Shown here: one piece after another, positions 6,355 to 54,041 of the stretch
How positions within the stretch are numbered: the first letter of the stretch is position 1
Layout of the letters: the number at the start of each line of letters is the position of its first letter
Source of the DNA: Utricularia gibba
Taxonomy: Eukaryota > Plantae > Magnoliophyta
Reading direction: 5' to 3'
Assembly: GCA_002189035.1 (NCBI GenBank)
Contig: NEEC01000008.1
Coordinates: 434,001 to 498,000, forward strand
Length of the DNA: 64,000 nucleotides
Made by a program: the position numbers and the translations under genes
Notes under the pieces: generated by a model
Databases searched by the model: none
Seen by the model: the letters and a program-made list of their open reading frames with translations, nothing else
What the model was told of the DNA's origin: nothing

Positions 6355-8255
<1,901 letters not shown>

Positions 8256-20972: not shown

Positions 20973-21262
20973 GGTGGGTCGGAAAATCAGAGAATTTCAG
21001 GCGAGAGAAGGAAGAATTGAAGCGTAGGCACAATAGTGAAGTGGGGTAACGGTTAGTAAAAATAGGAATGCCAAAAGAGAAAAAGGGAGATTGAGTGTAG
21101 AAACAGTTAAGGGAATAAGTGGTGGCGTGGGGCAGGTGAAAGTAAAGTCACTTGGAGTAGTGGGTGATAAAAACGAGGAAATAATAACGGTTACGAAATT
21201 AAAGTCATGGGTTGCCTCCCATGCAGCGCCAATTTACAGTCATTGGCCGACTGTGACACCTG

Positions 21263-26810: not shown

Positions 26811-28245
26811 AAAAACAAAGAAAAACAGCAGCAAAACGGAAATAAAAGAAAAACAAGAAGAAAGAAAGAAAAGAAAAGAAAAGAAAAAGAAAAACTATAC
26901 ACAACACTAAACACAAAAATACACAACTCCCGGGAACGGCGCCAAAAATTTGTTACGTGTCGTTTCCTCAAGAAATTTTAAATATTTTAAAACGTAAAAC
27001 ACTAGAAAGTGTAGTACGAGTATCGATCTCAGGGAGTTGTTTTTCGTGAAAAGTGTTTGCAAGCAACTTCTACAAAATGTCACGATTTTGTAAAAGGGGG
27101 TTTTTAAGATGCAAAAATGAAAGATACAATCTAAGTAATGGGCCTTGACTACGGGACGCAGTTCCTGGGAATAAGACTCCATCTCCTTCCTTTGTCCGTC
27201 CTTGCCTCAGTTTTCACTGATTTCTTCCGAATAGCTGGTTATAGGAGCAAGGAATAGCCTACTCTTCCTTATACTCTGATTGACAAGGAGGCACGGGAAT
27301 AGCCTCATGTGATTCCCCCTTGGACGATTAGGAAGACAAGAGGATTGCCTTCGATTGCCTTCAAAACCGAATTGTGTGCGTGTGCCCTGCTGTTGCCAAT
27401 GGCCAGTGGCAGGTTCGAGGTCACAACCTGTCCACTGTCGCGGTACCTAGGCCACAAACAATCTACTACTTCTCGAACCAGTAGGGTTGGAGTTGGTGCT
27501 CTTCACCTTGATCTTCACCAAAATCCGCGAGAAGTGGCCTGCTACTCATGGACCTTGACTAAGAGTCGTTACAGAAAGACTGTAACAAGACGCGTGGAAG
27601 TAAGCGGAATCCGAATGGAATTCAGTGAAGAACCGAGTGTATTGCTCAGGACTTGGAAGGAAACTTCATCTACTTCCCAGAAACTAAAGGTTTTAGCCCG
27701 AAAGGGCCATGGAAAACAGAAACGAAAGGAAACTAAGTGTTCTTCCTCCTTGAGGGGAGGAAGAACTCAAAAGTTTTAAGTACAAGGGAAAATGTTCAAA
27801 AGTCCTCAACTAAGTGTTCTAAGTGGCTTTTATATGACTTCCCACGTGCATTAACTCCTTTGGGTCCCCTTCCCATCATTCCTTCTGTCTTGCGTGCGCC
27901 AACAGACTTTCTTTGCGTGCAAGTTTGCGCCCAATAATTGTTGCAGACTCTGACATACCGTAAGTCATGGACCTTGACCAGTGTCAGTCTTCCGCCCACA
28001 ATCATTCCAACTTGCGTACAAGGCACGAAAACTCATAGTTTGATCACCTGCAACACTCCTGACAGTCTCCTGACATGCCTCGGTCAAAGTGTGAGAAAAA
28101 AATGCATAAAATATACACAAAATGGGAAAATAGGAATTTTCTAGTAAAAATCAAATACTTAATAATAAGACTCATAATTGGGCGACTTATCACTTAATTA
28201 ATACATAATAATACCTAAATAATAACTAGAAAATGACACTTAACA

Positions 28246-28830
28246 GACTAGCATGCATAAGTGGCTAATATGCCACACACAAGGGTAGTTTCTAGGGTAT
28301 AAAACACGAGCAAGCACTCGAGCAGAGGGAGGAACGAGGGATGAATGCCTAGGCGACCGTGAATGATTTCCATGCAATGTCTAGGCAGAACGAGTTCAAT
28401 AGAACCAAGGCAAGATGAGAGCAAGCCTAGGGTGTATTCCCTCACCTCTGCATGGGCGGAGCAAGCACATAGTGTTCCATAAGTGGAAGCCAATATAGCG
28501 GCAGTATGTGATCAGGGCAAGGGCAAGCCAAGGGTGTGGCACTGATCTCCCAAGGAATGTAGAAAGATCGTCCTGGGAGAGCCATTGGAATGGATGATGG
28601 GGCTCGGCGTGCACACGAGCAACAACCTAGGGTTGTATGCCTATATGGGGAAGCAACATAGTAAGCCCCTACAATGGGGTAGTGTCTCCATGCATGATGA
28701 GTGACTAGAACACCATGCGTGGGTGTGTGGTAGCATGCGGGCCATGATGTCGGGCGAATGGACCCCCCATCATTAGATGTCTAACATTCCCTCTTGTTTT
28801 TTTTCCCGTTCATATGGTGGTGTGGAGATA
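28246..28830. repeat. Unclassified older repeat into which the Athila element inserted (continues at ~16900-17132)
   Basis: The TSD shows both flanks were contiguous. GC-richer and richer in CATG/TG than the neighbouring AT-rich DNA, similar in texture to the Tekay LTRs. No family motif recognised. Confidence 0.35.
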
Positions 28831-29831
28831 GTCTTACGAGCTAGGCATGAGGATCGAAACCGAGATTTATGAAAACGAACCGTAACCGAAACCGCAGTAA
28901 CTAGTCGTAGGTGCTTTCTAAGCACTCATATGAATCCTTATGGGTGTGTGGAAGTGAAATTTTTAATAAATATTAAATATTTAAAGAATTGATTTTTATT
29001 TTAAATAAAATTAATATATATATATGAAAAATTATTTTTTTCAACTATATTTCTAATAAATTATTTTTAGTTTAAATCTTTAATATTTTTGAGAAAATAT
29101 TTTTTTATTATTAAAAAGTGAATACATTTAAAGAATTTAGTCTTACAGTTTTACATAAAAATGAAACATAACAATGTTATATTAACATTATCTGTAAAAT
29201 AAGTAATTTGGTGAGATTTTAATATAATAATAAGAAATAAATAAATTTGATATAAGTTCAATATATAATAAATAATTTGGTATATGTTCAATGTATAATA
29301 TAATAAAAAATACATTAATTTCACTAAAATTAATAAATATTGTTATCGTCCATTTTGTAATTCGTATGATTGTTTTTTATGTTCAATTTTATAATTAATA
29401 GAAAAAACATGATTCCGTTGTTAAAAATTTGAAGCGATGCCTACGCATTAGAGGATTTCGTAGGATGTATAAAAAATGATACGAAATAATTTTCTAGTAA
29501 CGGTACCTACTAAATAAGTACTTTGGTAGGAGCTAGCCATAATAATACGAAATAATTCAATTTTACTGGAAAAAAAAAATATTGTTATCTCTTTTGTAAT
29601 TTGTATGTTTGCTTTTATGTTTAATTTTATAATTTTCGTAAAAAATGTCAATTAGTTATTAGAAAATTAAGCGATATTTGCAAAATAATTAGATTGTCAC
29701 GATTGAAATATAATACTACAAAATAAGTCAAATCTTTTGAAAAAAAAACACAACATTGTTAATGACTCTTTTCATTTTCTTCCCTTTCCTTTGGGTCTGC
29801 CTCTACCTTTTCCTTTATCTTTGCTTGTGCC

Positions 29832-32800
29832 TGTTGTTGCAAGAAAAATAGAGTCTTGGGAAGTAACAAAAAGGTAATGCTTATGAGATCACTTTGGATG
29901 AAAAACGACTCATGAACAATAAGAATGACCAAAAACCTAATTGACACACATTACTAGTAGGGTTTATATATACCCAATACCTAGGTTACCCAACAGTGGG
30001 CCACAATCATTGAAAACACACAAAAAGCCCAACAACTCGAATCCAACACTTCCATGCTAGAACTCAACACCTTTTTATCTGAAATATAACATTATGACAC
30101 AAGATTAGTGCTTTCAATCACCTTCAAGCTTTGGATTGAGGCTGATCTCCAACACTCCCCCCCAGACCGAGATCTCCCAACTTGAGAAAGTCTTCCATAG
30201 TCATGAGATTCATGTTCTTCCTTGCTAGCTCAAACTGAACTCTGTTCAAACCTTTGGTGAGCCCATCAGCAAACTGATTCCCACTCTCAACATACTGCAC
30301 TTTAATCTTCTTCTCCTTGATGTAATTCCTTATGACATGATACCTGATTCTTATGTGTTTGGCTTTGCTGAAGTTCGCCGGATCCTTGATAATGGAGATT
30401 GCAGCTTGATTATCCATAAGCAGATGTGCAGCTTCTTTTTGTATGAATCCAAGTTCGTTTAGCATCTGCCTCAACCAAACACAATAGTTCGAAGCATGTG
30501 CTGCTGAGATGTATTCTGCTTCAGCTGTTGATTGTGCTACCATTTTTGTTTCTTCGAAAACCAGACTATAGGGGTCTTATTTAAGAAGAAGAGTGCACCA
30601 GATGTACTCTTGCTATCTTCAGCCATACCATAATCACTATTTGAGTAGGCTCTAAGTTTCAAGATTGGTTTTTCACCTTCATAGGGATAGAACAATCCGA
30701 AATCAGTAGTAGATTTTATGTACCTGAAAGCTCTTTTCACAGCTGCCATGTGAGTTGTTGTTGGTTTGTTGAGGAAGCGAGATAAGACATTTACACAAAA
30801 ACACAAGTCAGGCCTTGTATGCTGGAGATAAATGAGGCTTCCAATCATACTTCTATAAGTAGTGGCATCCACATTCTTTCCCTGATTATTCTCTCCAATC
30901 ACCTGTTTGTAATCCAAAGGCGTTTTTGAAGGATTGACATCTTTGAACCCAAACCTTTCAAGAAGTTAAGAAGTTCATTACAGTACTTTTTCTGTGATAT
31001 GAATGTTCCAACACCTTCAAGTTGATGAATTTCCATGCCTAGATAGTAGGACATCATTCCAAGGTCAGTCATCTTGAATTCATTTTTGAGTAGAGCTTTG
31101 AATTCCTCAATCTTTCTTTCATTACCTGAGGTAATCATAAGATCATCCACATATAAGCTAATAAATAAACGATCATCTTCTTTTCCTTTAACATATAGTG
31201 AGTAATCACTATATGTTTTTCTGAAACCAATACCCTGGAGAAAGTTATCCATGCGTTCATTCCATGCTCTAGGAGCTTGCTTCAACCCATAGAGAGATTT
31301 CTTTAGCTTCAATACCTTGTCTTCATGACCTGACACTTCGAAGCCCTTTGGTTGTTCAACAAAAACAACCTCCTCCAACACACCATTCAAGAACGCAATC
31401 TTGACATCCATGTGATGCACTTTCCATCCATGAGCAGCTGAAATGGCAAGAAGTACTTTAATCGTGTCAAATCTTGCTACTGGTGCAAAAATCTCATGAA
31501 AATTTATTCCTTTGATCTGACTGTATCCCTTGGCTACTAATCTAGCCTTATATTTGTTGATAGAGCCATCTGCATTCATCTTGGTTTTGAATAACCACTT
31601 AAGGCCAATAGGTTTGAAACCCCTATCCTTGGGTTTATCAACTAACTCCCATGTTTCATTTTCAAGTATAAAATTCATCTCTTCCTTCATGGCCTCTCTC
31701 CATTTCGGATTTTGTACAGCCACTTCAAATGATGTTGGATCTCCTGTCAATAATCCAGCCAAAATATCAACTACAGCATCTTGGACATCATCATTCAACT
31801 TGGAGAAACTTATTGTTGGAGCCTTATTTCTATTGCTTCTTCTAATGTCAGTAACATGACTATCTTCATTATCTATTGAATCTCTGATGTTTTTGCGTTT
31901 CCTCCTTTGCCAATCATGATCAGATGGGTAATAATCTTCATCATCAGTATCAGGTTCCTCTCCATCAGATTCATCTGTTGATGAGTCTTCTGCATTCGTG
32001 CCTTGCTCCTCTTCTGGGATTTCGAAATTCCCATCTGAATGTTGATCATTGGCCTGATGAGATTGTCCATATAAGGGTTCAGAGTTTGATTCTGAATTCT
32101 CATTGGACAAGCCATCTTGATTTGTGACCATCTCCTCCTCTTGAGCTGGAAAATTCTCATCTGAATGCTGATCATTTACTTGATTTGAATTTTCATGAAC
32201 GAGTTCTGAAGTTTCTTGGTTTGTTGAATTCTTGGAAGAGAAGTTTTGAGGCATGTGTGTCCAGAGGTCTCCTTTAACATGGGTGCTATGCCTTCCAAGA
32301 CTTTTATGAGCTTCTCATCATTCAGAGCAATGCAATCATCAATTAAAGTATACCTTGCACCTTCATCAAAAGTGATATCATGGCTGAAGATAAATTTCTT
32401 CTGTTGAGGTAGATAAACATTATATCCCTTGGTAGTGTTGCTATAACCAACAAATACACCAGATACAGATTTCTTTTCAAGTTTTCCTCGTTTTTGGTCT
32501 AGTATATGAGTAAAACACAGACTACCAAAGATTTTGAGATGATCAACCTTTTTAATATTACCATGCCATTTTTCATGGGCGGTTTTTCCACTAATCGCCC
32601 TTGAGTCAAGCAAGTTCAATAGATATACAGATGTAGATACCGCTTCAGCCCAGAAATTTACAGGAAGATCTTTCTCAAACAATAGGCATCTTGACATATC
32701 AAGGATTGTTCTGTTTCTCCTTTCACATATACCATTCTGTTGTGGAGAATATGGTACGGTGAATTGATACATGATTCCCTCATTTTCATAGAACATTCTC

Positions 32801-35215
32801 ATGCTATTATTGTAGAATTCGCCTCCATTGTCTGATCTAATCATCTTCAAAGAGCATCCACTCTGATTCTCAATCATCACTTTGAATTTTCGAAAGATAT
32901 GAGGAACTTCTGACTTGCTTTTAAGAAAGTAAACCCAACAATAACGTGAATAATCATCAATGAATGTAACAAAATATTTACTCCCCCTAATGAACATTCC
33001 TTAAATGTTCCACAAACATCTGTATGCACAAGCTCTAATTTCTCCTTTGCTACTGAATCACTGGAATAAAAGGGCTTTCTACACTGTTTACCTTGATGGC
33101 ACACTTCACATATGGCATTAGCAAACTTGATGTCTTTCAATTCCTGTACTTCCTTATTCTTCTGCAATATTTTCAGATTGTTGAAGCTATAGTGCCCAAA
33201 ACGTTTGTGCCAAAGGCTTCTTTGATCCTGAAGTGAGAAAATACAACTTTTATGATCACTGACCATGATTTGGTAGAGGTTGTAGGTGGTCAACACAGCA
33301 TGGAATCAATCTTCGTTTTTGGATCAGCAACCTTAACTTTAGTGGTTATACCACCAGCGTCCTTCATCAGCTCAATGTCAAAACCTTCCCTGCTCAATTG
33401 GCCAAAGCTCAACAGGTTCTTTTTGAGGTTTGGTGAATAATAAGCATTATCAACTTGAACAATTCCTTCTTTTAGCAAGAGTAAAATGCTTCCTTTTCCC
33501 ACAATGCCAATATTTTCACCAGTGCACGTGCTTACCTCCTTCCCAATCTTTTCAAGCTTGAGAAATGACCTTGTATCACAACATACATGATAGGAGGCGC
33601 CAGAGTCCAAGTACCAGCCTTTAGCATCTGAGGCTACTATCATTAGAGCACACTCATACTCAAAAGGATCTTCAAAAGATATTTCTGGCTCATCTTCAAA
33701 GTAGGTAAAGGATGCATGTGATTTCTCTTCCCTGGAAGTAGCCTTCTTGTTATGCTCAACTTTTATTGGATTTGACATTCCACATACCTTGTCAAGATGG
33801 CCTCTTAGATTGCATTTCGTGCACAAAAGATCAGGTTTCCACCAACAAAACTCACTCCTGTGATTCTGTTTGTTACAATGCTTGCAAGCATTTGTGCTTA
33901 AAGTCCAACAATCTTCACTCTTATGGTTGGATTTGTCACAATGCCTGCACTTCTGATTGCCCATCGTTGATGTCGGGATTGACGTTGGTAATTGTTTGAT
34001 GGCTGTTGACTTGACATCCTTCACATTGTTAATTGCACCTGAGTTCATATTCATATTCTGCATTTTGGTGAGGAGAGCAGTTTCACCATAAGTTTTCTCA
34101 ACTTCATAACCATCTCTTAGCTCCAATCTCTTTTCTGTAGATTGCAACTCAATCATGAACTCTCTAAATGTTGGCTCTGGTGTAATAGGATATTCAGGAT
34201 ACAGCTGATGGAGCTTTCCTTCAATAATGTCAAGGATTTTTCTTTCTGTCTCAAGTGCACATAACTTTGGCTCGAATCTTGCAGGTAGGCTCATGATTGC
34301 CTTGCTAATCACCTTTTGATCCTCAAGTTTTTCCCCCAATCCTCGAATCTCCTTCACAAGCTTCGCAGTATGTTCATAATAGACTTTTATGGTTTCATTG
34401 TCTGACATTTTGTTCCTCTCAAAGTCCTCCAGCTTGTTTTTGCATAATATCTCTCTGAGTTTGGCATCGCCTTCATAATGGGATTTGAGAGTATCCCATA
34501 TTTCTTTTGCTGATAGACACTATGCAATATCATCAAATAGATGTTCAAAGATGGCTTGATACAAGGCATCCATTGCTTCATCTTTTCTCTGTTGAAGATA
34601 TTCAGCTTCCTCTTGCTGTTCTGATGTGGATTTGCTTGTTATTGTAATCACCGGAATCTCCCTTTCGACAACATCCCAAATCTTTCTGACCCGCAGGTAG
34701 CTGCGCATCTTTTTGACCCAGCTTCCATACTCTGAACCATCAAATATTGAAGGTCCTCTACCAGATGCCATCATAGCCACCGCTTGACAAGCTTTGGGTT
34801 GATACTTGGTAATCCACCAAGTAAAAAACGCTGAACGGTAAATAAAATACTGAAACGAACACAGGTTTGAGAACCTTACTGCTCTGATACCATGTTGTTG
34901 CAAGAAAAATAGAATCTTGGGAAGTAACAAAAAGGTAATGCTTATGAGATCACTTTGGATGAAAAACGACTCATGAACAATAAGAATGACCAAAAACCTA
35001 ATTGACACGCATTACTAGTAGGGTTTATATATACCCAATACCTAGGTTACCCAACAGTGGGCCACAATCATTGAAAACACACAAAAAGCCCAACAACTCG
35101 AATCCAACACTTCCATGCTAGAACTCAACACCTTTTTATCTGAAATATAATATTATGACACAAGATTAGTGCTTTCAATCACCTTCAAGCTTTGGATTGA
35201 GGCTGATCTCCAACA
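29832..35215 (-). mobile_element. Young full-length Ty1/copia LTR retrotransposon
   Basis: 323-bp LTRs at 29832-30154 and 34893-35215 with 3 differences. TSD GTGCC. PBS TGGTATCAGAGC (tRNA-iMet type, plus 34881-34892). PPT at 30155-30165. Confidence 0.98.
30124..34774 (-). pseudogene. Copia gag-pol polyprotein (gag, 3 zinc knuckles, protease, integrase, RT, RNase H)
   Basis: FDGSEYGSWVKKM (gag); WYLDSGASYH (protease); LWHKRFGH...CEVC, FIDDYSRYCWVYFLK, PQQNGICERRNRT (integrase); KARLVAKGYSQ, LYGLKQAPRAW, LYVDDL (RT); STAEAEY, KHIRIRYH (RNase H). One stop at 34520-34522 and five 1-bp frameshifts in homopolymer runs. Confidence 0.95.
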
Positions 35216-37565
35216 GTGCCCGCACTTGTAGAAGGTATGTCTCTTTGTTGAGCCATTGCTATAACATCGTTTTCATTCAATTGAGATTGCAATCTGTGAA
35301 GTTGTAATTCTTCCTCTAACACCTGTATTTTTTCATTCAGCTTCATTATTTCCAATTGAAAGTTGATAGATTTTTTTTGTCCAGCAATCAATTCATCGCC
35401 TTTCATCTTCAATTCAACCTTGTATACAGATTGTTGTGCTACCAAATCATCCATTCTGTTTTTGTTTTTCTAAATCTGAAACTTCAGATCTGTTATCTAA
35501 AGAAGAAAAAAAAACTAAATTAGAAAACATAAAAAAACAACTATCACATGTATTAGCAAAATAAGTTTCATTTTTATTACCCCATTTTCCATCCGTTGAA
35601 TGTGTTTATATTGGTTTAAAATGAGTTCTTTGTCATGTTTGGTGCAACCAAGAGCTTCTCATTAATATACACTTCAGCCTCCTCATGAATAGGCACTTCA
35701 TTCTCCCATCTCCATTTTCCTTTTCAGAATTCTCCTACATAAAATTTTTTTTATATTGCAAACCTTATTTATTTGAAGAGAAAATTAAAAATTTAAATAA
35801 TATTCCTACTTTATTTACATGTTGTTCATTGCTATATAAACAACAAGCAGATGACGATTTCGCCTTGATGTTTGTGCAGACCACCACTCAACGACACCAT
35901 GAATGTTTCGAAGTGCTGTCATAGTGTTAAATAAATAAGTAAAATAACATATTGGAAAAATAATGTACATTAACAAGACTTGCATCGAATTTGAGCAGAC
36001 TTCGAGATGATGTCTTCAGTCATATATCTTTTTGATTGCAAAAGACTTTTTAATGCATGTCTAGTTTCCTCATTCACATTGATTTTTTCAATACGAGAAT
36101 TTATAACATCATCCCCAGGATATGTCAATGGATAATGCCTTGAGATTTCAAAAGATATAGGTGGTACAATCCATAAAAGAAGTTTATCCCATCGTACCAC
36201 AGTTCTAGGTAGGTTTTGATAAAACCTAGTATTTGGTAATCCTTGAAAATACTATATTCCAGTAGGAGCTTTTTTTGGAAGAGATAGTGCAAAAAAATTT
36301 GACAAGTAGGTTCTACATATTCTTCTTCACACAAGTGTAAGAAGGCTAAGATAATATTATAGGAATATGGTGCTAAAAACCCAATAGGCAATCTCAAGTA
36401 GGTGAGCACATCAAGAGCAAAGGGATGAATAGGTAGTCTAAGACCAGCATCAAATGTTTTACGAGACACAAGCCAAGCATTGGAATGTTCATGAGGGGGA
36501 TTGGTGTCAAGAGGTGTGTTTTGCGGAGCAGGAATTGTCAACCAATCGGTTGGGATGAAATATTTAACACGAAATCTATCCATTCCCTAATCAATAAAGG
36601 ATACATAATAAGAATAAAATTCTAAAAATAAGGAAATGGAAAATAGCAAAACAAACATGATATTAACGATGAAAAACGCATCTAAACCCAACTAAATACA
36701 TAATTATATGAAAAGACAATTTTTAATAACTAAACCCAACTTAATATATAACGCATACTGCAGCAACAAATGCATAGAATACATTTCACAAAAATAATGT
36801 AAGTTGCAACAAAAAGATTACCCGATTTTAAGCCAACGAATTCTGGGTTTTCAGGAGCACGACAACACTGATAAGAAGAGCCTTTGTATGCAGCAAAAGG
36901 TGATGTAAACGAGGTAGGGTTCTACACTTAGATAGTGGACGCCAACTTTTTCAGAAAAGCATATTGCATAAAATAATTCACATCCATATATAGTCTAAAT
37001 CAATTGTTTAAAATAATTAAAAAAAATTGCGCCACCTACAAAATACTCATTGTTTGATGTGCCGTCCCAAATTTCAAATTTTCAGTATTTTAAAAATGAT
37101 AAACGAAAAAGGTTATGGATATATTTCATCGAAACCTACGCATTACGTGTGTTTGTATGTACCTTCTCAAAATCCAACTATTCTTACATTTTTTTAAAAA
37201 ATGAGGAGAATTTATTATACATTTAATTGTCCTAAACCCTTAATTAAACTACACATTTAAAATTTTAGTAGTTTTTGTTCATAGTAATGAAATTTATCAT
37301 CACCAATATTGTAACGTTAAAAATAATAAAAACCACATTTCTTTGCAAATATATGTTCAATATTTTTTTATAAAGCATCATAATATTTGACATTTAAATT
37401 AGAGAACAAGATATATTAGTGTCTAATGTAAATGTGGATGATTATTTATAAACTTTAATGTCATTATATTCCATTGAATTATACAATTGTAATTTTAGAT
37501 TTTTGATATATAACCAATTTAATAACCAAGTGTATGCAAGAGTATACTAGCAAAAAATGACTTAC

Positions 37566-39181
37566 CGGATTTTTCATTGATTTGTGAGGTGAATCATCAA
37601 TTAATAAGGTATTGTGACGGTCATATCTTGTGTTCAATCCATTGTTGACAGCCCATACACGATTCAACTCCTTCATGCAAACCGTGTTGCTAGGATTGTT
37701 GTGAACACGTACGCCGGTGTCCGTCGTCATGGTTTGGTCCCACATGAAAATGAGTTTGTCGAATAAGGAAGGTGGAAAGACTCATTTAGTGATTGCTTGT
37801 AGTTGCTCCCTACAAAATAAATCACTTGCAAGTGTTTGCACCAATTATAAATACCAACAAAAAAAAAAAGATGCAGCACACATACCCCCACGGGCATGTG
37901 GATGTAGAAAAACTACATAATTTGCACTAAAAATTACCTATGATATCTCAAAAATCATTAATGCACATAACACACAAATATAGGTATTGTTTTAACGTAC
38001 CTGATCGGCCATATATGATTTTATCTGGAGGGATTCGTGACCTTGATGCTCCAACCCTATAAACGATGTTTGTTAGCACACCATTTATATCCAAGATAAT
38101 CAGCTTTCGTTGAGGCTCAGAGGCACTAAAAGGAGGTCCGGTATATGCCCAACGACTCTCATACCAATCCAACTTGTTGCGAAGCTCTTCATTCTCCTTT
38201 GTTATAAATTCAAGTCTGTCATCGACATCATCGAGACCATGTGTGATCTCGTCCCCTTCAACATCATTCCCATCTTGTGTCCTCTCATTCCTAGACAAAT
38301 CTTCATTCTTTTGGGAGACTCTATGATTTTTCAACACACCACACCAATAGCGTTTTGTCCCCAGTGCATCCACAAATGGTGGTAAAATGTCAACAAAACT
38401 CATTTGCATACTTGAGAAGAGGAAAATAAGATCTTGTATATCCCTCTTGGATAAGGTATCAAATCCTACAATAAAAGTAAATTTATTAACAATATATTCA
38501 ACAAAAATATTGAATAAGAATATTCAACATGATAAGTGTAAAAATATTCGAAAAGGGTATTGAATAAAAATATTCAATCACAATAGTTTAAATAAGAGTA
38601 GATTAAAAAAAACACTCAATCATAATACTTTTAATAAAAACATTCAATACAAACATTCATATTTCTTCTAATAATACAAAGCAAGATTTACCTTTCGCCT
38701 TGCCTACTTCGCTCGAATTAGTATAAATTTGAGGAAATTTGGTTTCCTTTGGAGGACATATCCAAACAAAACTTGTCCACCATTATTCAAATCCTCTTCT
38801 CACATCCTTTACTAGCACCAACCCTTTTTTCCCCTTTAGGGTGTAGTGGTTCTTGTTTAGAGTCCTAGAGCATATACTCATAGCAAAAAAATAGCGAAGT
38901 TCCACCTCAAGATATAACTCCTCACAAATACTAACAAAGGCCAACACATATGAGATAGATCTTGGAGTCAAATGAATCTCTAAACATTCTAATATTTCTT
39001 CTAAAAAGGGCAATAATGGTAACCGCAAACTACAACGAAAATGTTCCGTGCTTAAGGCAAATCCCACTGGACCCACACGGTTTGGAATTTCATTCTCAAT
39101 CAACTCATCCGGTTCTTTGTCCCAAATCTCATCTTCATCCGGTATCAAGAATCTAGTTCTCAATTTTTCAGAAGTGTGCAT
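37566..39181 (-). pseudogene. Reconstructed multi-exon gene: TRP28-like domain fused to an FCP1/NIF-type HAD phosphatase domain
   Basis: Exons 39181-38692, 38465-38001 and 37912-37566, all GT-AG with consistent phase. TRP28 motifs RTRFLIP, SLRLPLLPFL, LTPRSI, WWTSFVWICPP. HAD motifs RKLIILDINGVL, KLIFMWDQ, KELNRVW, YDRHNTLLIDDSPHKSMKNP followed by a GTAAG donor. One stop at 38783-38785 and two in the last exon. The expected final exon was not found. Confidence 0.75.
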
Positions 39182-39859
39182 CTACAAAGATCCATAGGAA
39201 TTGTATAAAAATTCAAACTACAATAATTCGACAAGGTACTACAAATTGGAACATAGATCAGCAACCCATGGTGGAAAATAAATAACTTACCTTGTTTAAT
39301 TTACAGAACACTCCAAGTAGGTGATGGGACTGTGGGGGCGTCCAGTCGCTTTCGACTGGGGGAGGGGGAAAGAGGTAAGAAAATTTTTTTACCAGATGGG
39401 TGGGGATTAACGTGGGGAGTGGGTAAAGTGGGGAGTGGGGTGGTGATGTGCAGCGCTGTGTATGAGTGCGTGGGGATTTGGTTTAATACACCAAATCATA
39501 AGCTAATGATTACGCGCAATGATATCCCTACTTTCGTAGGTTGTCGGTAATAGCTTCCGTTGTTTTTAGACAAGGTGTGTGCCGCTTGTTTGAATCGATG
39601 CGAACCCATCGTGTAATTAATACTCCAATTTTGAGGCACCCAGAATCACTAATGTGGGCGACTGGCACAAGAAATGCAAAATTAGGCACCTGTACCCGAA
39701 ATTTGGGGATTGCGCTATCTTTGAAAGTATTCTTAATTTTCATAAATATAAAAATTTGTTGGTGCATTAATTGGAATATAAAAATCTGAAAATAAAATGA
39801 TTTTATATATCCTAATTATTACAAATTAATTTCAATAAATAAAGAATATTCGTCTATTG

Positions 39860-40260
39860 CTTAGACCATTTTCCAGACACCCACATTGCCTCGTGTGGAT
39901 GTCTGGAAAGAGAGTCGAATATCCTTTCAAGGCACCTACAAGGCCTTGTGTGGGTGTCTAGAAAGAGTGGGTAAGGCCATTTCTAGGTACCTACAACTGT
40001 TATATGGGTGCCTGGAAAGGAGTATTTGAGACAGTTTTCCAAACACCCTCTTCCCTCATGTTGGTGCCTCGGGAGGGTGTACAGGAAAGAGAGTTGGACG
40101 GCACCTACAAAATAATGTATTGTGTGGGTGTCTGGGAAGAGTGATTTCCAGGCACCCATGTCTGTTATATGGGTGCTTGGGAAGGATTATTTGAGACAGT
40201 TTTTCAGACACCCTCTTCCCTCATGTAGGTGCCTCGGGAGGATGTTTGCGAGTCTGCGAC
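39860..40260. repeat. Array of palindromic TTCCAG(G/A)CACCCA ... TGGGTG(C/T)CTGGAA modules
   Basis: At least six alternating forward and reverse copies, plus a larger internal duplication (about 39995-40075 vs 40165-40245). Related modules at 28916-28954 and 43601-43730. Confidence 0.8.
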
Positions 40261-40351
40261 CGAATTCTAGCACCCACTTTTAATTAAAAACATGAATACA
40301 ACATTTTCTTACAAAGTAATATTATTTCATGGAGCACTAAATGTTTCCAAA

Positions 40352-42427
40352 TTAGGAGTCTTCAACTTCATCTTCACTTGAACTTGAGGATAAGGTTTGA
40401 TTTCTTTTCACAGCCTCCAGCCAATCCTTTAGACAAATGCATGCCTCTACGTTCAATTTGGAGCGCTTGTGATTAAGAACTCGTCCCCCTGTACTAAACG
40501 CACTTTCGGATGCCACTATAGATGCTGAAGGTGTTAGAAGATCTTTGACCATTCTAACCAAGATAGGGTAAGTAGTAGAATTTGTCTTCCACCAACCCAA
40601 TATATCAAAGTTGTCATCATCAACACTCTCAACAATAGGAGTATTATTGTAAAGTGTTTGAAGATGATGAAGAGGAGGACACAAATGAACTATGCTTCCT
40701 ACGAATAATGTCCATTGGATTGCGACTAACAAATGTCGAATTGTTACATGCTTTAGGAATAGGAACACTAGGATCCCTATATTTAGACGCATAAAGGGAA
40801 TACATGGCACGTAGAACATTATTGGCAACAACATCTATTTCTTCACAATTTTTAATGGAAAAAGCAACATCATCCACACTAAATGATTCTGAAATACATT
40901 CAAGTAATGTTTTCAGACTTAACCCGGGGATCCAAAATAGGTGCAACAAGAAACAAATGTGGGACTTCATCAAAATATTTCAAAAAATTATTTTTCATCT
41001 TTCGCACTACATCTCCCAAAAAATCACAATCACTTTGATGGTCATAAAAAGCAAACAAAATTTTACAAATACATGAAAGCACAAGTTGAGAAGTTGGGTA
41101 GTAAATACCACTCAAAATCTTAGTACAAGAATAAAGTATTTCTAATAAATTTACTAAACCTCTTATTTTTTCAAAAATAGAATGAGTCAAGAAATTGTAG
41201 CCCGTGACTGATTCACAAAATTCAATAAGAACATGTTGATAAGGAATCAAAAGTTGTAACATATCATATGTAGAATTCCATCAAGTTGGACAATCACTTT
41301 TAAATTTACGATAAGAGATGTTCATTTCTTGACAAATCCTTTTAAAATCATCTCTTCCATTAGGGATAGTTCTAATCATACTAATTAAATTACGAATAGG
41401 AGTTAAAAAATTTCACATTCTTTCAAACCATTTTGAACACACAAATTTAATATATGACAAGTGCACCTAGTGTGGAAAAAAATGCTATTTAACATATGAT
41501 TCATGCTATTTTTCAAAATGTCTATAGCATTTGTATTTGCAGAGTCATTATCCAAAGAAATAGAAAAAATCCTATCAGATATTCCATAAAATGCTATGAC
41601 CTTTTCAATGATTTTAGCAATAGAAAAACCATTATGTGGTGATGGCCATTCTTGAAAAACTAAAATTCGTTTTTGCATACACCAAGAATTATCTACCCAT
41701 GAACATGTAATAACAATATAACTCTCATTGTTACAACCTTTCCAACCATCACAAGTCAAACAAAAATTACAATGTAGAGATTTAAAAGTAGAAATTAAAG
41801 AGTCACGTATATTTTTAAAATCCTCAAGTGCCATATGATGTGCGGTTTTCCTAGAAAAATTTTTGTATCCCAGTTGAACTTGTTTCAACATATCATTAAA
41901 AGAAGGTTTTTCAACTAATGAAAAAGGAAGTTCATTAAGTATCGAATAACGCACCACATTTACTTGAAAAAGTTTATAATTAAAAACAAAATTAGATAAT
42001 CCCACACTATTGTCACCCCCTAAACATAATCTCGTTTGACGAAACTGAGGTAATTTATCATTATGCTTCTCCCTAACATGCCTCTTATATGTACCGGTTC
42101 CCAACCCTTTTTGAAAGTGTACTCTTTACCACAATGTTTGCAAGAAATTTTTTCGGGATTACAAAAAACAAAATGTTCTCGAATATCTAGAGAATCATTA
42201 CTAGTGTTTTTCGATCTTTAACGACAAAGGAGACTCGATGAGGTAGAAGAACCCACTTCTTGAGGACTAGAAAAATCATCTTGTTCGGGTAAAGGACCAC
42301 ATGCAAGCTCTTGTAAAAATTGAAGGTCTTCCCCAAAAGAAAATTCTCTATCATTTTAAAAAACGCAAGGTATAGTAGAATCAGCTTGAGAAGCTTGAGA
42401 AGAATTTTGCAAACCAGACCCCTCCAT
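40352..42427 (-). pseudogene. hAT-superfamily transposase (BED finger, DDE core, dimerization domain), decayed
   Basis: SCKHCGK...GTGTYKRHVREKH (zf-BED); CLTCDGW, SLDNDSAN, TRCTCHILNL, APILDPRVK; WWKTNSTTYPILVRMVKDLLTPSASIVASESAFSTGGRVL (Dimer_Tnp_hAT). Several stops and frameshifts. Confidence 0.93.
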
Positions 42428-43175
42428 TCTGTAAAAAATAAAAAAACCTATTACCCTATAGGCTTCACCAATGTCGTCCAAGTGGAATTCTGAAACTTGA
42501 CACTTGAGAGTACCTCCAATCACGTAGAAGTTGAAATAGAATTATTTCTAGTAATGAGTGATGAGACAATAAGAGAAAGTAGTGGAAAACTATAAGATAA
42601 CCATATCATATATATAGACAAATTTTATTAATAAATTAATAGCAACGATTACTTTCAAAACCATGTGCAACTCCACAGTCTGCACAGTCACAAATGCATG
42701 TACTAGCCGTTGAAATAAAAATATACATAACAAATATATTTTAAATAAAAATTTCAGATATGATGCTGCCACACGAGTCTTCACATGAACATTTTAAATA
42801 TATACTTATTTTAAATATACATTGCGTTACCAATATGGATACATTAGTTTGGCAATGCATAACTAGTTATTGAGAAAAAATATATAGATAGTGAAATGTT
42901 AAAATATTTTGTGAATTATTGTTATTCTGTTTTAGCATATAAATCTATTAAGTTATAGTTCAATAAACAAGTGAACTTAATATATGTCTACATAAAAATT
43001 AATAATTTATTTTTATGTGAATAATATAAAACATATATTTCATTCTCGAATAATCACATAAATTGGAATTTTTTAAATATTAATTTTTGTTTTACTAATC
43101 TGTTTTACAACAAAAAACAACGTTCAACATAAACTTTGATTTATGTATTTAAATTTATGTATTGAATTATTTTAT

Positions 43176-43470
43176 ATTAACGCTACCTACGAAAGTAGTA
43201 ATTTGGTAGGAGTCGAATACACAAATATGTTGGACTCCTACCACATGACTTATTTCGTAGGTGCCATTAATGTGGGACATACACAGGCGTGGTTTATGCA
43301 TAACCTATGTCCGTGTGTTGGATTTCTACCAAATTACTTATTTCATACGTAGCGTTAATACAAGATACACATGGGCATCGTTTATGTATAATCCGCGTTC
43401 GTGTATTGGACTCTTATCAAATTACTTATTTCATAGGTAGCGTTAATGTGGGTACACATGGGCGTGGTTC
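43176..43470. repeat. 88-bp tandem repeat (about 2.7 copies) preceded by an inverted partial copy
   Basis: Units start TTGGA at 43230, 43318 and 43406. 43176-43222 is the reverse complement of the unit core. A further copy of the core lies at 29501-29533. Confidence 0.85.
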
Positions 43471-43849
43471 AAAGAAGACAATGAATACTCCATCTCAAAA
43501 GCCATGGATGTATATTGCCATTTGTGAACAAAAGAAATCAACAAGATGAAAAATAAGTGTATGTAATTTAAAAGAGTGTGTCGTGAGGGTATTGAGACCA
43601 TTTTCTAGGCACTCACATTTGTCGTGAGTGTGTTTGGGAAGGGGTGTTTATTAAGGGCAAAAATCGATTTAGACCCCATCAGTGCTTGATAAGATTTTTC
43701 AGGCACCCACTTCCTTTGTATGTGTGCCTAAAAAAATTTAAAAAAATAATATACATTTTTTTATTTTAATTTTAAATTTTAAAATTTTAAAATTTTTAAA
43801 ATTGTTTTTAATTTATTTTTAATTGTTTTAATTTTTTTTTTAAATCCAA

Positions 43850-44023
43850 ACCGCACGGTTTACGGTTCGGAACCGTGAACATTACGGTTCACACACGGGT
43901 TGGAACCGTCGGTTCCACGGTTCCAATTATGCCGAACCGAACCGAAACCGTACGGACATCCATCCGTTGAAACCGACTGTTTCGGTTCGAACCACGGTTC
44001 CGGTTCAATCGAACCCACCTCTA
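43850..44023. repeat. hAT-type subterminal AACCG/CGGTT repeats and terminal inverted repeat
   Basis: Dense AACCG/CGGTT pentamers ending ...GAACCCACCTCTA (TAGAGGTG on the minus strand), resembling Ac-like hAT ends. Confidence 0.8.
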
Positions 44024-45045
44024 GACTGATCCCTTACATTCTATGTAGGTGGTGAGTCAGGTAGTAGCACGGGCAAGGATGCGATATGATTGGGCGAGGA
44101 ACACTATAGCGCTAGTAGTATGTAGTGTAACTATGGCGTGCATGTGTTGTGGGCTGATGTACCACCATTTTGTGACAGTTCTCATGATGGTATTAGTATC
44201 TTATCGCTATATTTCATCATTTTCTCACCACATTTCCGCCACCCCATCACCATCTCCTCGCCATGGGGCACATGGAACCCTAAAGGGGTCCTGGTGTCAT
44301 TCGAAAGCATCCTCCCTATTATATATGTTGAATATACTAAATTATAGATAACGACACTAGACATAAAAATATTGAAAAAAACTACATTTTTTTGCTAAAG
44401 ACAGAAGATGTCCTATGATGGGGTCCGGCACCTCCAACAGCACCTCCCCCCTATGATTGTAGAACATTTCAAAACTTGTGTAATGGTAGTAGACATCAAT
44501 CTATCAAAAAAAAGTAATGTTTTTTAGGAAGTCTTGGGTAAGTTCCTTACATGTCACGTCCTTGTCGTGTCCGAGCACCTCCACGAGCCATGCCTCCGCC
44601 AAAGAGTCTTGTCCTACAGCCCCCTTCCCTGTGACGATTCGTAGCGACACCCTGATCGGGCAAACCATCACCACATGCATGCTGGTAGCATGATCGCAGC
44701 ATCACTCTCTGCACCCAAGGCATCCCATACAATGCATCCTATGCACATGCCTAGTGTAGCCTCGCCCACATGTGGTGTTCGTTCCTGCCAAGTGTGTCCA
44801 TGACCGGGGTTTTGGGCATAGAGGTTAGCATGGCACAAAAACCAGCCTTTGTTCATACTTAGCAAAATGTCAAGTTCAAATAAGAAGAAAAAAAGGGAAA
44901 ATAAGCAAATCTTGTAAGGTTCATGTGAAGCGCCCCAAGAACTACCCTGACCACCATCACTCAGCCGTCCCATCCTCAATATAAGCCACACTTATCCTAT
45001 CCATGCTCTCATTCCCGAATGCCCCTACAAGATATGTAAGGGGTT

Positions 45046-45984
45046 CAGCTGCATGCGAAAGTTGGAAAGGCGGTGAAACACGAAAAAGGCATTACAATTC
45101 AGCTGCGTGCAAAACTTAACACTTTTTCTTTTCTTTTGAGGTGAAGGGCGAACAGAAGATTCTGGAACCGGATCAGAGGGAAATGGATTTATCGAATCGG
45201 AAGTGGGAGGTGTACTAGAAATAATAGGGATATCAGGTGGAGACTGAAAGAGATGATGAAATTCTAACTCAGAACCAGAGGGGATGATGAAATCGCACCA
45301 TGCCCCCCCCCCCCCCGAATATGACCAAGGATCCCGCAAGTGGTCAATGTATCTCACGATAACATTTGGAACCGGGACTCGTATTTCACAGAGCATTCGT
45401 TGAGCCTCCGATACACATCTCTTCGAGAATCATTAGAAGGGCGAAAGCAGCCGACCTCAAAGGGACTGGGAGGCTTAATCGGGAAGTTCCATCTAGCTCC
45501 TATGAGGGGAGCAACCCAAATAAAGGAAGACCACCAATCATGATGGGTATCGGGAGGTTTAACGATGAAATCGGGATGATCTTCGAACCGGCGAAATTGA
45601 AAGTGAGCACGCCCATGCATCAGCGGCTTAGCTTTTCAAACTGCAACTTTGAAGAGTTGAAAAAAAATCCACCAAGGTCATTGCCGGATCCATACCCGCC
45701 GAGTAGAACAAGAAGGCAGTAAAGCAAAAGATTGAATTCGGGGCTAGGCAATAGAGGGGGATTATGAACATATGAAGAAATTGAACGAGTAGAGGATGGA
45801 GCGGAAATCGGAGGCCGCTTTCTAAATAGGCAATGGGGATGGGGAGATTAAAACAGGGAAGAGGCATTTCCCCAGATCCCCAAGGAATCTGACCATCCCT
45901 AGCCTGAGAAATGATATATTCTTCCGGAATCAAATATTTGGAGCGGATTGCAGGGATGCTCAGTGTGCTAGATCTTCTGCCCAT
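45046..45984 (-). pseudogene. Antisense Transposase_28 (TRP28)-like ORF of the Tat/Retand fragment, frameshifted and truncated
   Basis: RSKYLIP, ESGLRFPLHPLL, LAPNSI, PDTHHDWWSSFIWVAP; intronless; antisense to the LTR, as described for Retand elements. Confidence 0.8.
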
Positions 45985-47007
45985 TTCGTTTTCGAGAACT
46001 GAAAGGTGGAGGAAGTTGCAAAGGGGACAAACAAAGAGTAGAAACCCGTGGAGGGATTAGGATGAGAAGAAGAGGATTTCAAAAATCTAGCGGAACGTAG
46101 AACTAACCCAGGAATGCGAGAAAGATGCAGAGAAAATACGGATACTTGAAGGACTTGCAGTTTCCGATGAGTAACATGGCGGCAAACACGACGGAGCACG
46201 AATGGCGCTGAAACTTCCCAGAAGAACAAAGAAAGCAAAGGGGAGAAGTGACGGAAAAAAGGCGTATTTATAAGGGAGGTATTCGGATGGTGAAACGGCA
46301 CATCGTTTGGAGTGCCCAGAATGAGTGGGAAGAAGCGTGGCGTGCCCAGGAAGTGACGCGTGGCGAAGAAATCGTTTTGAATCAGTTTGAGACTCACCCC
46401 TGGAAGAATGATACGCTCGAAATCGGAATAGCTGGGATTCTAATTCCCCGACTTGCCCTGAAAGGGTCCATATTGGCAAATCAGAGGGGCTGAATGATGG
46501 AGTACAAATCAAATATGGTTAGATGGTCGTTGAAAAGCTGCCAAAAAATGCTCTGACAGGATCGCGCCGGCCAACAAACCGATATGTATCAGAGACACAG
46601 TCTGAAAAGTGGTTGAATTACGGCAATGCGGACGGCGATCTTCTGAAAAGAAGGATCATGATACAGGCGCAAAAAGCAACCGATAATCCTAAAATTCAGG
46701 GGCCGGTCAGTTCGACCTTTTCTATAAGTAAGAAAAATCTTGAAGAGAAAGGGGTTCGACCCTAAACCTCCCAACATGTACCTTTCTTTACCATCCCCAT
46801 CTAGTAAAGGCTTTCTCCAGCGAGCTTCGATAGCTCCGTGGTTTTTCCGTCCTCCGGCGTTTTCCACGTAAAAATCTCCGCCCACCCTTATTTTTTGTTG
46901 ATCAAATCGAACAAATTGCAAAAAAGCATAACAAGGTGCGATATCTCCGGCCGCACCTATAACCCGAAAATCGGCCCCATCATGGACACCGATTTTTACC
47001 CATAACA
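45046..47007 (+). mobile_element. 3' fragment of a Tat/Retand-type element (antisense TRP28 ORF, PPT, 3' LTR) inside the Tekay LTR
   Basis: LTR 46495-47007 (TGATGG...CATAACA) preceded by purine-rich AGAGGGGCTGAA; homologous to the solo LTR at 11798-12313. Host LTR similarity stops at 45045 and resumes at 47008. Confidence 0.8.
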
Positions 47008-50000
47008 TCGTGCAAAGCATGTTGCCTTTGGGTTGGGTGGCCATCTCCCCTTCTTGCCCCTTGATTGCATTGATCACACATCCCTTGATTCACTATGCCC
47101 TTGATCTATGCCGTTAACACAATGGAACACCCATATTAGCCTCTAAACCATATGGAGATCCCCTTACTGAATCGAAGCACCTTCTTCCTCCCCTTGGTTC
47201 CTATTATAGATATTTCCATATCTCCAAGATTTGATATCTCCTTGGATTAGGAAACTTCCCTTTGACCGTATCTTTCCATATCTCACCACCTTTCGCACAC
47301 CATGCATGCTGCAATTGTGTCTTGCACATGTTGCAAGCATGTCTTGTTTGCGCGTGATGTGAGCTTGTGTACGCACATGCTGTGCGTGTGCTATCCCTGT
47401 CTCATGCGTGTGCACGTGCACCCCCACTAGTCTCTATGTGTGCGATGCTCCATCATTCTCCCGCTAGCCTCTGCGCACGCGGTACCTCCTCTGTTTGCCC
47501 ACTAGTCTCTATGCGCACATGCTTCCCTATTCATCTGCTAGCCTTTGAGTGCTGCGCATGTTGTTCGCACGCTCTCTCGCCAGCCTCACTTACCATGCTA
47601 CTCATACGATATCTCGTCTATGTGCTATCTCGACAGCCTCTGCCACTCTTGGTACTCACACAATATTCGCGCCCCTGTGCTAGCCTCTACTACCGGGCTA
47701 CTCATGCACACCTCCGCGCTAGCCCTTGCTGCGTGCGTGCCCTCCGTGCACGCCACACATCGGTCTCTCGTGCCAGCACTACGCACCACATACTCCATTT
47801 TAATTCATCTCCAGCATCCCTCGATCAAACCATTATATTCCATTCAAACACATATAAACCAAGTAAGATCGAGGAAAAGCATCGGTACCTTATGTCGGGA
47901 TTGTCATAAACTCCCCTTTTTTATAGAAGTTTCATCCTCGAAACTTTGCCATCCATGATCGTCAAATACTTAGCTTGCATAGCCATCTCCTTCTCCTAAG
48001 TGGATTCCTCAACTCCACGCCTCATCCATTGCACTTTTACCCACCATATCGGCTTCCGATTTACCATGGTCACCTTTCGATCTAGGATCCTCAAGAGCTT
48101 TTTCTTGTAAGTCAAGTTCTCAAGTCATTTGTCCTGATCTCCATATCTAGCAAGGGAAGGTGTCTCATGAGTTATGAGATGTGGAACACATCATGCATCG
48201 CCCCCATTCTCGAGGGTAGGGCGAGTCAATAGGCCACCTCCCCTACTTGTGCTGTCACCTCTTATGGTTCAATGTACCCTGATCCTAAGTTGTCAAACTT
48301 CCCTTGACATATGACCTCTTTTCATGGAGAGACCTTGAGGTATGTCTTGTCCTCTACCTAGACTCGAGTGGTCATCAATGTTGATCCACCCAACTCTTTT
48401 GTAGATCCTAAGCCACCTTCACCCTTTCCTGGATCATCCTGACATTTTGCTCAACATCTTACACTAGGTCTGGTCCCAATATTTTCCTTTCGCTCACCTC
48501 ATTCCAATTTAGTGGTACGCGGCATCGTCGCCCATAGAGTGCCTTGAATGGTGCCATGCCTAGACTCGCTTGGTAACCATTGTTGTATGTGAACTCCGCC
48601 AGGTATATGTGTTCGTCCCATCCCCCCTGCAATTCTAGTGCGCAAGCTCATAGTAAGTCCTCCAGTACTTGTATGGTCCTCTTTGATTGTCCATCCATTT
48701 AAGGGTGGAAAGCAATGCTCATGAGCAGCTTTGTTCCTAATTCCCCTTGCAATGCTCTCTAGCAGTAGAATGTGAACTTGGCATCTCGGTCAAATACTAT
48801 GGTCGTTGGTATGTCGTGTAGGCACACAATCTCCCACAGATATACCTTGGCGAAAACATTCACACCCGAGTCCATGATGCATTTAGACCGTCATTGATCT
48901 TTGGCAACCATGCGACAAAATCCATTGTCACATCCTCCCACTTCAACATGTGTATATCTAGTGGTTGCAAGTTACCTATAGATTGCTAGTGTTCTGCTTT
49001 AGTTTGCTGGCATACTTGGCATTATGTTGTTCATTCCACAATAGAGAACCTTAGGCATGACCACCATAAGCTCTTCTTGATGTCCTGATTCATTTTCGTA
49101 TTGCTTGGGCGAATGGTTAGAGGTGAGTGATGCGCCTCCCCCAGGATTTCTTCTCTCAGACCATCCCTTGCTGGTACCCGTACTCGCCCGCGTACACAAA
49201 TAGTCCCATCTTCGCATAGGCTATATGGTCCGACCCCTTTCTCTACATCATCCTATTGTACTTCCCCTGAGTTATCCTCACCTTACACGATGCATATCTG
49301 TTCTAATAAGTTTGTAGTTAACCTAAGCATAGCCATGTCCGTATCTATCAAAATCTCTATGTCAATTCTCTGGCTAAGTCTTTATTTACCACAGGATTGA
49401 TGAGTTCGTCTGCTACTACATTAGCCTTGCCAAGTTAGTACTTTGCCTGTAAGTCATAATCCTTGATCAGTTCCACCCTCACCTTTGTCATAGGTTCAAC
49501 AATATCTTCTGGGTGAATATTTCATTCAAGCTCTGATGATCAATAACAACTCACATCGTGCTCCATATAGGTAGTGTAGTCATACTTTTAGTGCATGCAC
49601 GATTGCCGCTAACTCCAAGTCCTACACATGTTAGTTCTTCTCGTGGGGCTTTAGTTGCCATGACGCATAAATGATCACATGTCCATCTTGCATCAATATT
49701 GCGCCAAGGCCTGTGCCACACACATCCGTATATACGGTATAATCCTTGCTTGGATGTGGCAATTGTAGCACGGGTGCAATGGTCAATTTTGCCTTGAGGT
49801 GGTTGAACACATCTTGACATTGCTCCATCCACTTGAACTTGGCATCCTTACTTATGAGACTTGTTAGAGAAGTGGCGATGTTGGAGAAGTCTTGTATAAA
49901 TCATATATAATATCCAACCAATACGGAAAAAATGCATACCTCACTCGCATTCCGTGATACCCCCCACTAGACCACTGCTTCAACATTATTTAGGTCGATC

Positions 50001-53000: not shown

Positions 53001-54041
53001 TCCTCGCCTTTCCCTAGTTGTCCCCTTTGTTGCCACCTTTGTGAAGTGGGAGTGGAGAGGAAGAAGTGGCTTCGACTCTTCTCTTTAAATAGGGTTCATC
53101 CTCCCCTTGATTCCCATTATAGATATTTCCATATCTTCAAGATTTGAACTCTCCTTAGATTAGGAAAATTCACTTTAACCATATCTTTTCATATTTCACC
53201 ACCTTCGCATGCCATGCATGTCGTCACCGTGTCTCGCACATGTCCCATTCGTGTGTGATGTGCGCTTGTGTACACACATGCTGTGCGCGTGCTATCCCTA
53301 TCTCATGCGTGTGCGTGTGCGCCCCTGCTAGCCTCTATGCATGTGAATGCTCCCTTGTTTGCCCGCTAGCCTCTGCACACGTGGTACCTCCTCTATTCGC
53401 CCACTAGGCTCTATGCGCACATGCTTCCATGTTCATCTGCTATCCTTTGAGTGTTGCGCATGCTGTTTGCACGCTCTCTCACCATCTTTACTCGCCATCA
53501 TGCTCGTATGATATCTCGCCCGTGTGCTATCCGCATGCGCCCTGCACTAGCCTCTGCCACCCTTGGTACTCACACGACATTCGCATACACCCCGTGCTAG
53601 CCTCTACCACCATGCTACTCATGTGCTCCCCACACACACCCATGCTAGCCCTTGCTGTGTACATGCCCTCCGTGCATTCCATGTGCTAACCTCTCTTGCC
53701 AACACTACTCGTGCAATCTACCTCATTTCCATACATCTCCTAGCACCCCTTGATCAGACCCTCATATTCCATCCCAAACACATATAAACCAAGTAAGATT
53801 TAGGAAAAACATTGGTACTTTATGTCGGGTTCGTCACACTTCCCTCACTAATCCCCTTGAACACCCAAACCATTACACAATGGAATCATCATTTAGAAGA
53901 CAAGGGGGCACTGTGCTGTGCTCAATGTATTATGAATAATAGGGCCCAGTATAATATAAGGGCTAATGGGGCCCAAGTTGCAAGGACCAAGGCTGTTTTA
54001 CGGGATGCCCGCCCAAGAGGACGATTGCTTTGCCTGAGCAT

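Follow-up and report, generated by a model that had tools for sequence, protein, structure and literature searches.

A probable transposon-associated gene family joining a TRP28 domain to an NIF/FCP1-like HAD domain, read from a dead copy in Utricularia gibba

Why should a domain of retrotransposon reading frames be spliced, in frame, to a phosphatase-like domain in the neighbourhood of a DNA transposase? The question is raised by a locus on the minus strand of a TE-rich stretch of Utricularia gibba DNA, 64,000 nucleotides long and referred to here as the window. We consider it probable that what lies here is one dead member of a repeated TRP28-NIF-like gene family associated with transposons. 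The intact gene would be an accessory gene of DNA transposons in Utricularia gibba, present in many copies and containing introns, and its protein would start with a TRP28 module, continue with an acidic helical linker and end in an NIF/FCP1-like HAD domain.

How is such a gene laid out? The ATG of the TRP28 exon lies at 39181 and is preceded by a candidate 5'-UTR intron (39182-39290), suggested by a donor AACAAG/GTAAGT at 39290 and an acceptor TTTGTAG/ATG. From the ATG a frame of 132 codons runs to a TAA at 38785-38783, and past this stop the same frame resumes through the segment WWTSFVWICPP...GKAK as far as a donor GCGAAAG/GTAAAT, with the last exon base G at 38692 and the GT at 38691-38690. 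Exon 1 (38692-39181) is followed by a predicted GT...AG intron 1 (38466-38691), which ends in the acceptor TTATTGTAG/GA, so that exon 2 begins at base 38465. The G at 38692 and the GA at 38465-38464 form a Gly codon and the two exons are in phase, the spliced peptide reading ...WWTSFVWICPP...GKAKGFDTLSKRDIQDL. This in-phase junction, 38692/38465, had been proposed in an earlier note on the same DNA, and it is confirmed from the sequence; the coordinates and peptides quoted there are likewise all correct. Because no RNA match was obtained, the predicted splice is backed by sequence signals only. Exon 2 (38001-38465) holds 154 open codons in DNA of ~37% GC and would encode the last part of the TRP28-type module, then a helical linker of acidic character and, near its end, RKLIILDINGVL, with a HAD motif I of the form LDINGV (38094-38077; D at 38091-38089, N at 38085-38083). 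Its last base, 38001, is followed by the donor TCAG/GTACGT and by a region (37782-38000) without a frame open throughout, which we read as a second intron and/or decayed coding sequence. The third coding piece (37566-37781) is NIF/FCP1-like and runs in one frame from VFPPSLFDKLIFMWDQ to NTLLIDDSPHKSMKNP; it contains FMWDQ, a Lys at 37673-37671 and LLIDDSP, with the DD at 37598-37593, and ends in CCG/GTAAGT with the donor at 37565, from which a third intron would start (37448-37565). The second intron follows ...GRS in phase 1 and the third follows ...KNP in phase 0; from these two positions the earlier note had suggested capture at the DNA level, which we treat as a possibility. Six donor-type hexamers of the form GTA[AC][AG]T occur in 2.2 kb of the minus strand, where the rate across the window would predict 1.4; three coincide with the ends of the open frames of the coding pieces and a fourth is that at 39290. 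Further upstream, ~200-300 bases from the ATG, lie G-rich GTGGGGAGTGGG-type repeats (39390-39482).

The copy at 39181-37566 is dead, since it carries the in-frame stop at 38785-38783, has no open frame at 38000-37782 and lacks a recognisable last exon. Stops and the absence of a last exon had been described before, and both are borne out: apart from the TAA in exon 1, inspection of the 900 bases after the third piece revealed no recognisable last exon. For the second intron the earlier description stands in part, in that its donor TCAG/GTACGT is present and a clean acceptor joining exon 2 to the FMWDQ frame is not. The in-phase acceptors at 37912 and 37809 lead to a stop after 22 and 27 codons, respectively, the weak acceptor at 37780 is the only one that yields FMWDQ...NP, and a TGA at 37784-37782 stands directly before the FMWDQ piece in the same frame. 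A T-run at 37859-37869 differs in length between copies, and other copies show indels at 37841 and 37858-37859. For want of a clean acceptor, and given the variable T-run, some of the second intron may instead be coding sequence, now decayed, that once specified the central part of the HAD fold. A 61-aa open piece at 37912-37730 (FVGIYNW...) was recognised by neither Pfam nor the ESM Atlas, and it is our guess that it corresponds to the missing motif II region.

Is this arrangement peculiar to one broken copy? The earlier note had named adjacency of the two domains in this copy only as a result that would speak against a fusion, and the data from other copies show a many-copy repeat with contigs tiled across all exons. 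Contigs of two DNA runs of the same species, X3 and X2, were aligned to 37300-39500 at 80% identity or more. Matching contigs numbered 934 in X3 and 373 in X2, spread over all identity classes from 80 to 100%, and 37522-39500 was fully covered. Individual contigs overlap one another all the way from exon 3, through the second intron, exon 2 and intron 1, to exon 1, such that the layout common to the copies is read from tiled short contigs rather than from a single spanning record. Summed depth, which is not copy number, is ~1130-1270 in exon bins for X3 and 130-160 for X2; over intron 1, where contig depth falls below that of the flanking exons, it is ~490 and ~30, respectively, although AT-rich introns may align worse. 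The resulting ratio of exon to intron 1 depth is 2.4-2.6 in X3 and 4-5 in X2. From this better preservation of exons than of introns among the copies we infer that the family was under coding constraint during its spread. More than half of the differences among copies are C>T or G>A changes, the usual mark of methylated repeats, and an intron-less 38692/38465 joint is absent from the DNA contig joints listed.

The copy in the window also has changes of its own. Among the listed exon sites at which the majority of copies differ (n = 20), 6 are synonymous and 14 are not, and for this reason the private changes of this copy look neutral. The first base of the exon 1 stop codon is another letter in most of the depth in both DNA runs, which places the stop in this copy or its near kin. 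On the downstream side, most copies stop aligning at 37522, where depth falls from 755 to 135 in X3 and from 156 to 1 in X2; the loose ends give the same consensus in both runs, and it follows that most copies continue differently below this point. The consensus has no match elsewhere in the window. A clean truncation at 37522 was considered and dropped, because the last 13-15 letters of the consensus resemble window sequence ~13 bases further on and a small local duplication is involved.

An alternative hypothesis is that the repeat never worked as a gene, being instead a functionless Pack-type chimera of host NIF exons and a TRP28 fragment that was passively amplified, with the in-phase splice as a by-product. 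The capture and shuffling of gene fragments is common in plant DNA transposons, this copy is dead, the predicted motif I is without its second Asp, and no expression was seen: none of the seven RNA runs listed contains the stretch and two that were examined directly gave 0 contigs, which does not by itself prove silence. However, a passively carried chimera sits poorly with an exon depth 2-5 times the intron depth among hundreds of contigs, with 154 codons open in exon 2, and with three coding donors that are canonical and placed at the frame ends. We regard a Pack-type origin as distinctly unlikely and retain the reading of a transposon-associated gene that was probably under coding constraint.

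What, then, are the two halves of the predicted protein? The TRP28 reading of exon 1, taken up from the earlier note, narrowly passes the Pfam check: PF04195 (TRP28/Transposase_28) scores 26.8 bits on the 132-aa reading frame against a gathering cut-off of 26.2, with residues 45-95 aligned to profile positions 4-58 of 69. It shares 30% identity with the domain of a second TRP28 ORF (36583-36128; PF04195, 45.5 bits). Relatives of exon 1 in the word-indexed protein collection numbered 0, and AlphaFold2 gave the TRP28 ORF a pLDDT of 36 from a two-row alignment. TRP28 is the characteristic domain of the antisense ORFs of Retand elements (PMC11963269, PMC6317226), as the same note had correctly stated; it is a domain of unknown function for which DNA binding is predicted, and the word "phosphatase" does not occur in the Retand survey (PMC11963269). 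The predicted protein shares with Retand TRP28 ORFs an N-terminal domain above the Pfam cut-off and a helical or coiled segment after it, a segment likewise found in the neighbouring TRP28 gene at 36586-35194. It differs from them in that the gene has introns, stands beside a hAT transposase and carries an NIF-like HAD C-terminus. Moreover, Retand TRP28 ORFs lie antisense between pol and the 3' LTR, whereas the TRP28-NIF gene is not so placed: no LTR pair or gag-pol surrounds the interval 35193-44628, and the LTR elements of the window are separate insertions.

Two further TRP28 stretches occur in the window. The second TRP28 gene (35194-36586, minus strand) combines the PF04195 match with a W..LLLWIVPP segment and a coiled-coil region; 1 kb separates it from the TRP28-NIF gene, which lies upstream on the same strand, and a Copia element interrupts it at 35192. 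The third is a stop-ridden, TRP28-like stretch at 45507-45948 on the minus strand, which includes HDWWSSFIWVAP and falls within an old LTR-element region (44629-53531).

The C-terminal half was assigned from separate pieces. FCP1/SCP enzymes (the NIF family) are Asp-based protein phosphatases of the HAD superfamily. On the 72-aa third piece, the only stop-free one, the NIF profile PF03031 reaches 14.0 bits (E 0.042), short of its cut-off of 21.8, the pieces having been scored unjoined; the match spans profile positions 81-125 of 160 and no other Pfam family was matched. Neither the motif I piece nor the middle piece was matched to PF03031 by Pfam. In the ESM Atlas, a feature search that gives no E-value, PF03031 was found in 97 of the 100 clusters nearest to the third piece (best 0.91, 185 shared features), and the best cluster for the 42-aa LDINGV piece was also NIF (0.90, 176 shared features), followed by PNK3P, MDP-1 type, T5 dNMPase and HAD_PNKP. 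NIF is thus the top family in the Atlas searches of both HAD pieces. The two pieces also stand in the order expected of a HAD domain, motif I before motifs III and IV. We read the Lys of CMKEL (37673-37671) as a putative motif III and the DD of LLIDDSP (37598-37593) as a putative motif IV, and both fall within the stretch aligned by Pfam.

Could the NIF reading be a false positive, with the second half a rapidly evolving stretch of a TRP28 protein that is unrelated to HAD domains? The sub-threshold Pfam score and the Atlas hits without an E-value would allow it, as would the failure to find relatives by sequence: PDB searches with both HAD pieces gave 0 matches, an exhaustive phmmer search of 1.84 billion representative proteins gave 0 relatives of exon 2, and the word-indexed protein collection gave 0 relatives of the third piece. 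But three colinear lines point the same way, namely Pfam positions 81-125, 97 of 100 Atlas clusters with NIF, and the match of the LDINGV piece to NIF and other HAD families, and the expected order is kept from the nucleophile Asp through the Lys to the DD. We judge a false positive very improbable. Scans of metagenome contigs for relatives gave 0 matches, look-ups of the exact proteins for encoding contigs returned no record, and tblastn with the gene pieces revealed no second NIF copy in the window.

The presence of the fold and its activity are separate questions. The predicted domain resembles FCP1/SCP in having a nucleophile Asp in motif I and then a Lys and a DD in order, and differs in remaining below the family threshold on the available pieces and in its motif I, which is D-x-N-x-V in place of DXDX(T/V); neither the middle of the domain, where motif II belongs, nor its end can be read in this copy. 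The substituted residue, the second Asp of the motif, corresponds to Asp98 in CTDSP1 (PMC7281111). Among the sites listed for the other copies (40 of 500), the Asn codon of motif I shows no majority difference. We accept the predicted NIF-like HAD domain with a reservation over the missing second Asp. Because that Asp of DxDxT is replaced by Asn, catalysis is doubtful, and a domain with a motif I of D-x-N-x-V would more plausibly be a pseudo-phosphatase, or a phosphatase of impaired activity, than an enzyme of the normal kind. The claim with which the analysis began, an FCP1/NIF phosphatase fused to TRP28, can be kept as a spliced, in-frame NIF/FCP1-like gene, with "phosphatase" amended to "phosphatase-like".

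Which element would carry such a gene? Remnants of a hAT transposase in several broken frames (40355-42217, minus strand) lie 1.2 kb upstream of the TRP28-NIF gene on the same strand and comprise a BED finger, an RNase-H-like fold and a dimerisation domain; PF05699 scores 75.7 bits and PF14372 36.6 bits, and zf-BED, at 17.6 bits, is below its cut-off. The word-indexed search returned one relative of a hAT piece, a 39% identical fragment on a 1.6-kb contig. A convincing hAT-type end is found at 43845-44024 (minus strand), where the terminus ...CCCACCTCTAG is accompanied by 14 subterminal AACCG/CGGTT motifs. The candidate for the opposite terminus, TAGGCATGAGG... (28842-28900, plus strand), contains AACCG four times in a stretch of 45 bases, a density that chance would rarely give. 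The model of a hAT element from 28842 to 44023 was tested by end-to-end alignment and by a search for a target duplication: the two ends, 28842 and 44024, have a similarity score of 21 against 17.2 +/- 2.6 for shuffles, which is not above chance, and no 8-bp target duplication was seen for them.

A repeated motif offers a further clue to the extent of the element. The 13-nt sequence TTCCAGRCACCCA has 15 matches in the window against 2.6 expected; 11 copies, often in inverted pairs 8-13 bases apart, form a cluster (39630-40214) between the stop of the transposase and the TRP28-NIF gene, and the others, at 28720, 28941, 43603 and 43697, put two near each candidate hAT end. The motif may be a subterminal binding site of the transposase. 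Its distribution fits a hAT element of ~9.8 kb (with the Copia insertion removed) that has the gene inside, and equally fits one of ~4.6 kb that ends near 39400-39600 and leaves the gene outside. Whether the TRP28-NIF gene is cargo of this particular hAT element is, in our estimate, an even question; if it is not, it would be a fragment placed beside the transposase through nesting or rearrangement. The earlier placement of the gene "inside a transposon" is half supported: a transposase lies 1.2 kb upstream, and the search for a second end enclosing the gene gave no secure one. Remnants of Harbinger or MULE transposases were absent from 35193-44628 and from the other non-LTR parts of the window.

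The setting also bears on the idea that we are dealing with a pseudogene left by a normal host gene, or by a TE-derived gene since domesticated, which has transposons only as chance neighbours; introns of a host-gene-like kind and the lack of proven terminal repeats around the gene speak for it, but hundreds of diverged contigs in each of two runs, a methylation-type mutation spectrum and 0 relatives among representative proteins, which would be unusual for a conserved host gene, make it extremely improbable.

If the locus is a dead copy of a transposon-associated gene, what might the intact protein have done? One hypothesis is that the TRP28 module would target the protein to DNA or chromatin, where the NIF-like HAD domain would bind, or weakly dephosphorylate, a target carrying phospho-Ser, for instance a silencing factor or the Pol II CTD, and that the carrier element would gain more transcription or less silencing. 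We offer this role in the service of carrier elements tentatively, as one that is possible and still doubtful. A wider form of the hypothesis, in which the TRP28-NIF-like gene would be a portable TE-serving factor taken up and kept by three unrelated cut-and-paste superfamilies (hAT, PIF/Harbinger and MULE) in one genome, seems to us unlikely; under it, a targeting domain of retrotransposon origin would deliver to the element a domain akin to CTD phosphatases, which may lack catalysis, so that the element is transcribed more readily or silenced less.

Plant DNA transposons are known to carry accessory genes, among them VANC of VANDAL MULEs and the ULP1-like protease of some MULEs and CACTAs, and VANC sets a precedent for a TE-serving, anti-silencing role. 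Like these, the TRP28-NIF gene is an extra, intron-containing gene beside a transposase that would be amplified with its element; it differs from them in its domains and in being known from sequence alone. We rate the family as a transposon accessory gene. We found no relevant literature on a TRP28-NIF fusion, or on NIF, FCP1 or a phosphatase tied to Harbinger, hAT or TRP28.

The closest parallel in architecture was cited accurately in the earlier note: the plant mobile domain (PMD) proteins MAIN and MAIL1 pair with PP7L, MAIL3 is a PMD-PP7 fusion, and the PMD/PP7L module acts in TE silencing and gene expression (PMC7156037). PMD is found in Ogre elements as TRP28 is in Retand (PMC6317226), such that each pairing unites a phosphatase-type domain with a domain from the extra ORFs of non-chromovirus gypsy elements. 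The analogy is one of architecture only, since PMD is not TRP28 and the sequences are unrelated; PP7 is a PPP metallophosphatase whereas the NIF-like domain belongs to the HAD type, and MAIL3 is a host gene under selection whereas the TRP28-NIF gene is repeated and TE-associated. Few transposon accessory proteins are understood, and VANC and PMD/PP7L have a bearing on whether mobile DNA in plants is silenced or tolerated. In a TRP28-NIF fusion, an extra-ORF domain from retrotransposons would have joined a phosphatase-type domain for a second time, independently of PMD/PP7L, and TRP28 would gain a testable partner. The copy in the window documents the layout and the damage, and places the gene directly behind a hAT transposase.

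The remainder of the window is largely made up of other elements. A young Ty3/gypsy element (17133-28205, minus strand), with LTR segments 98-99% alike, encodes gag, RT, RNase H and integrase, and has an extra ORF (19858-19292) on which PF20167 (Transposase_32) scores 37 bits, the cut-off of 45 not being reached. A young Copia element (29832-35192, minus strand) has LTRs 99% alike and RVT_2, and the LTR segments of the older element at ~44629-53531 are 84-91% alike. Long open frames of 552, 300, 348, 252 and 194 aa form a chain at 266-5650 on the minus strand; they gave only weak coiled-coil-type Pfam matches and 0 known TE domains. Finally, a glyceraldehyde-3-phosphate dehydrogenase exon (7527-7796, plus strand; Gp_dh_C, 68 bits) places an ordinary host gene ~30 kb from the TRP28-NIF gene.
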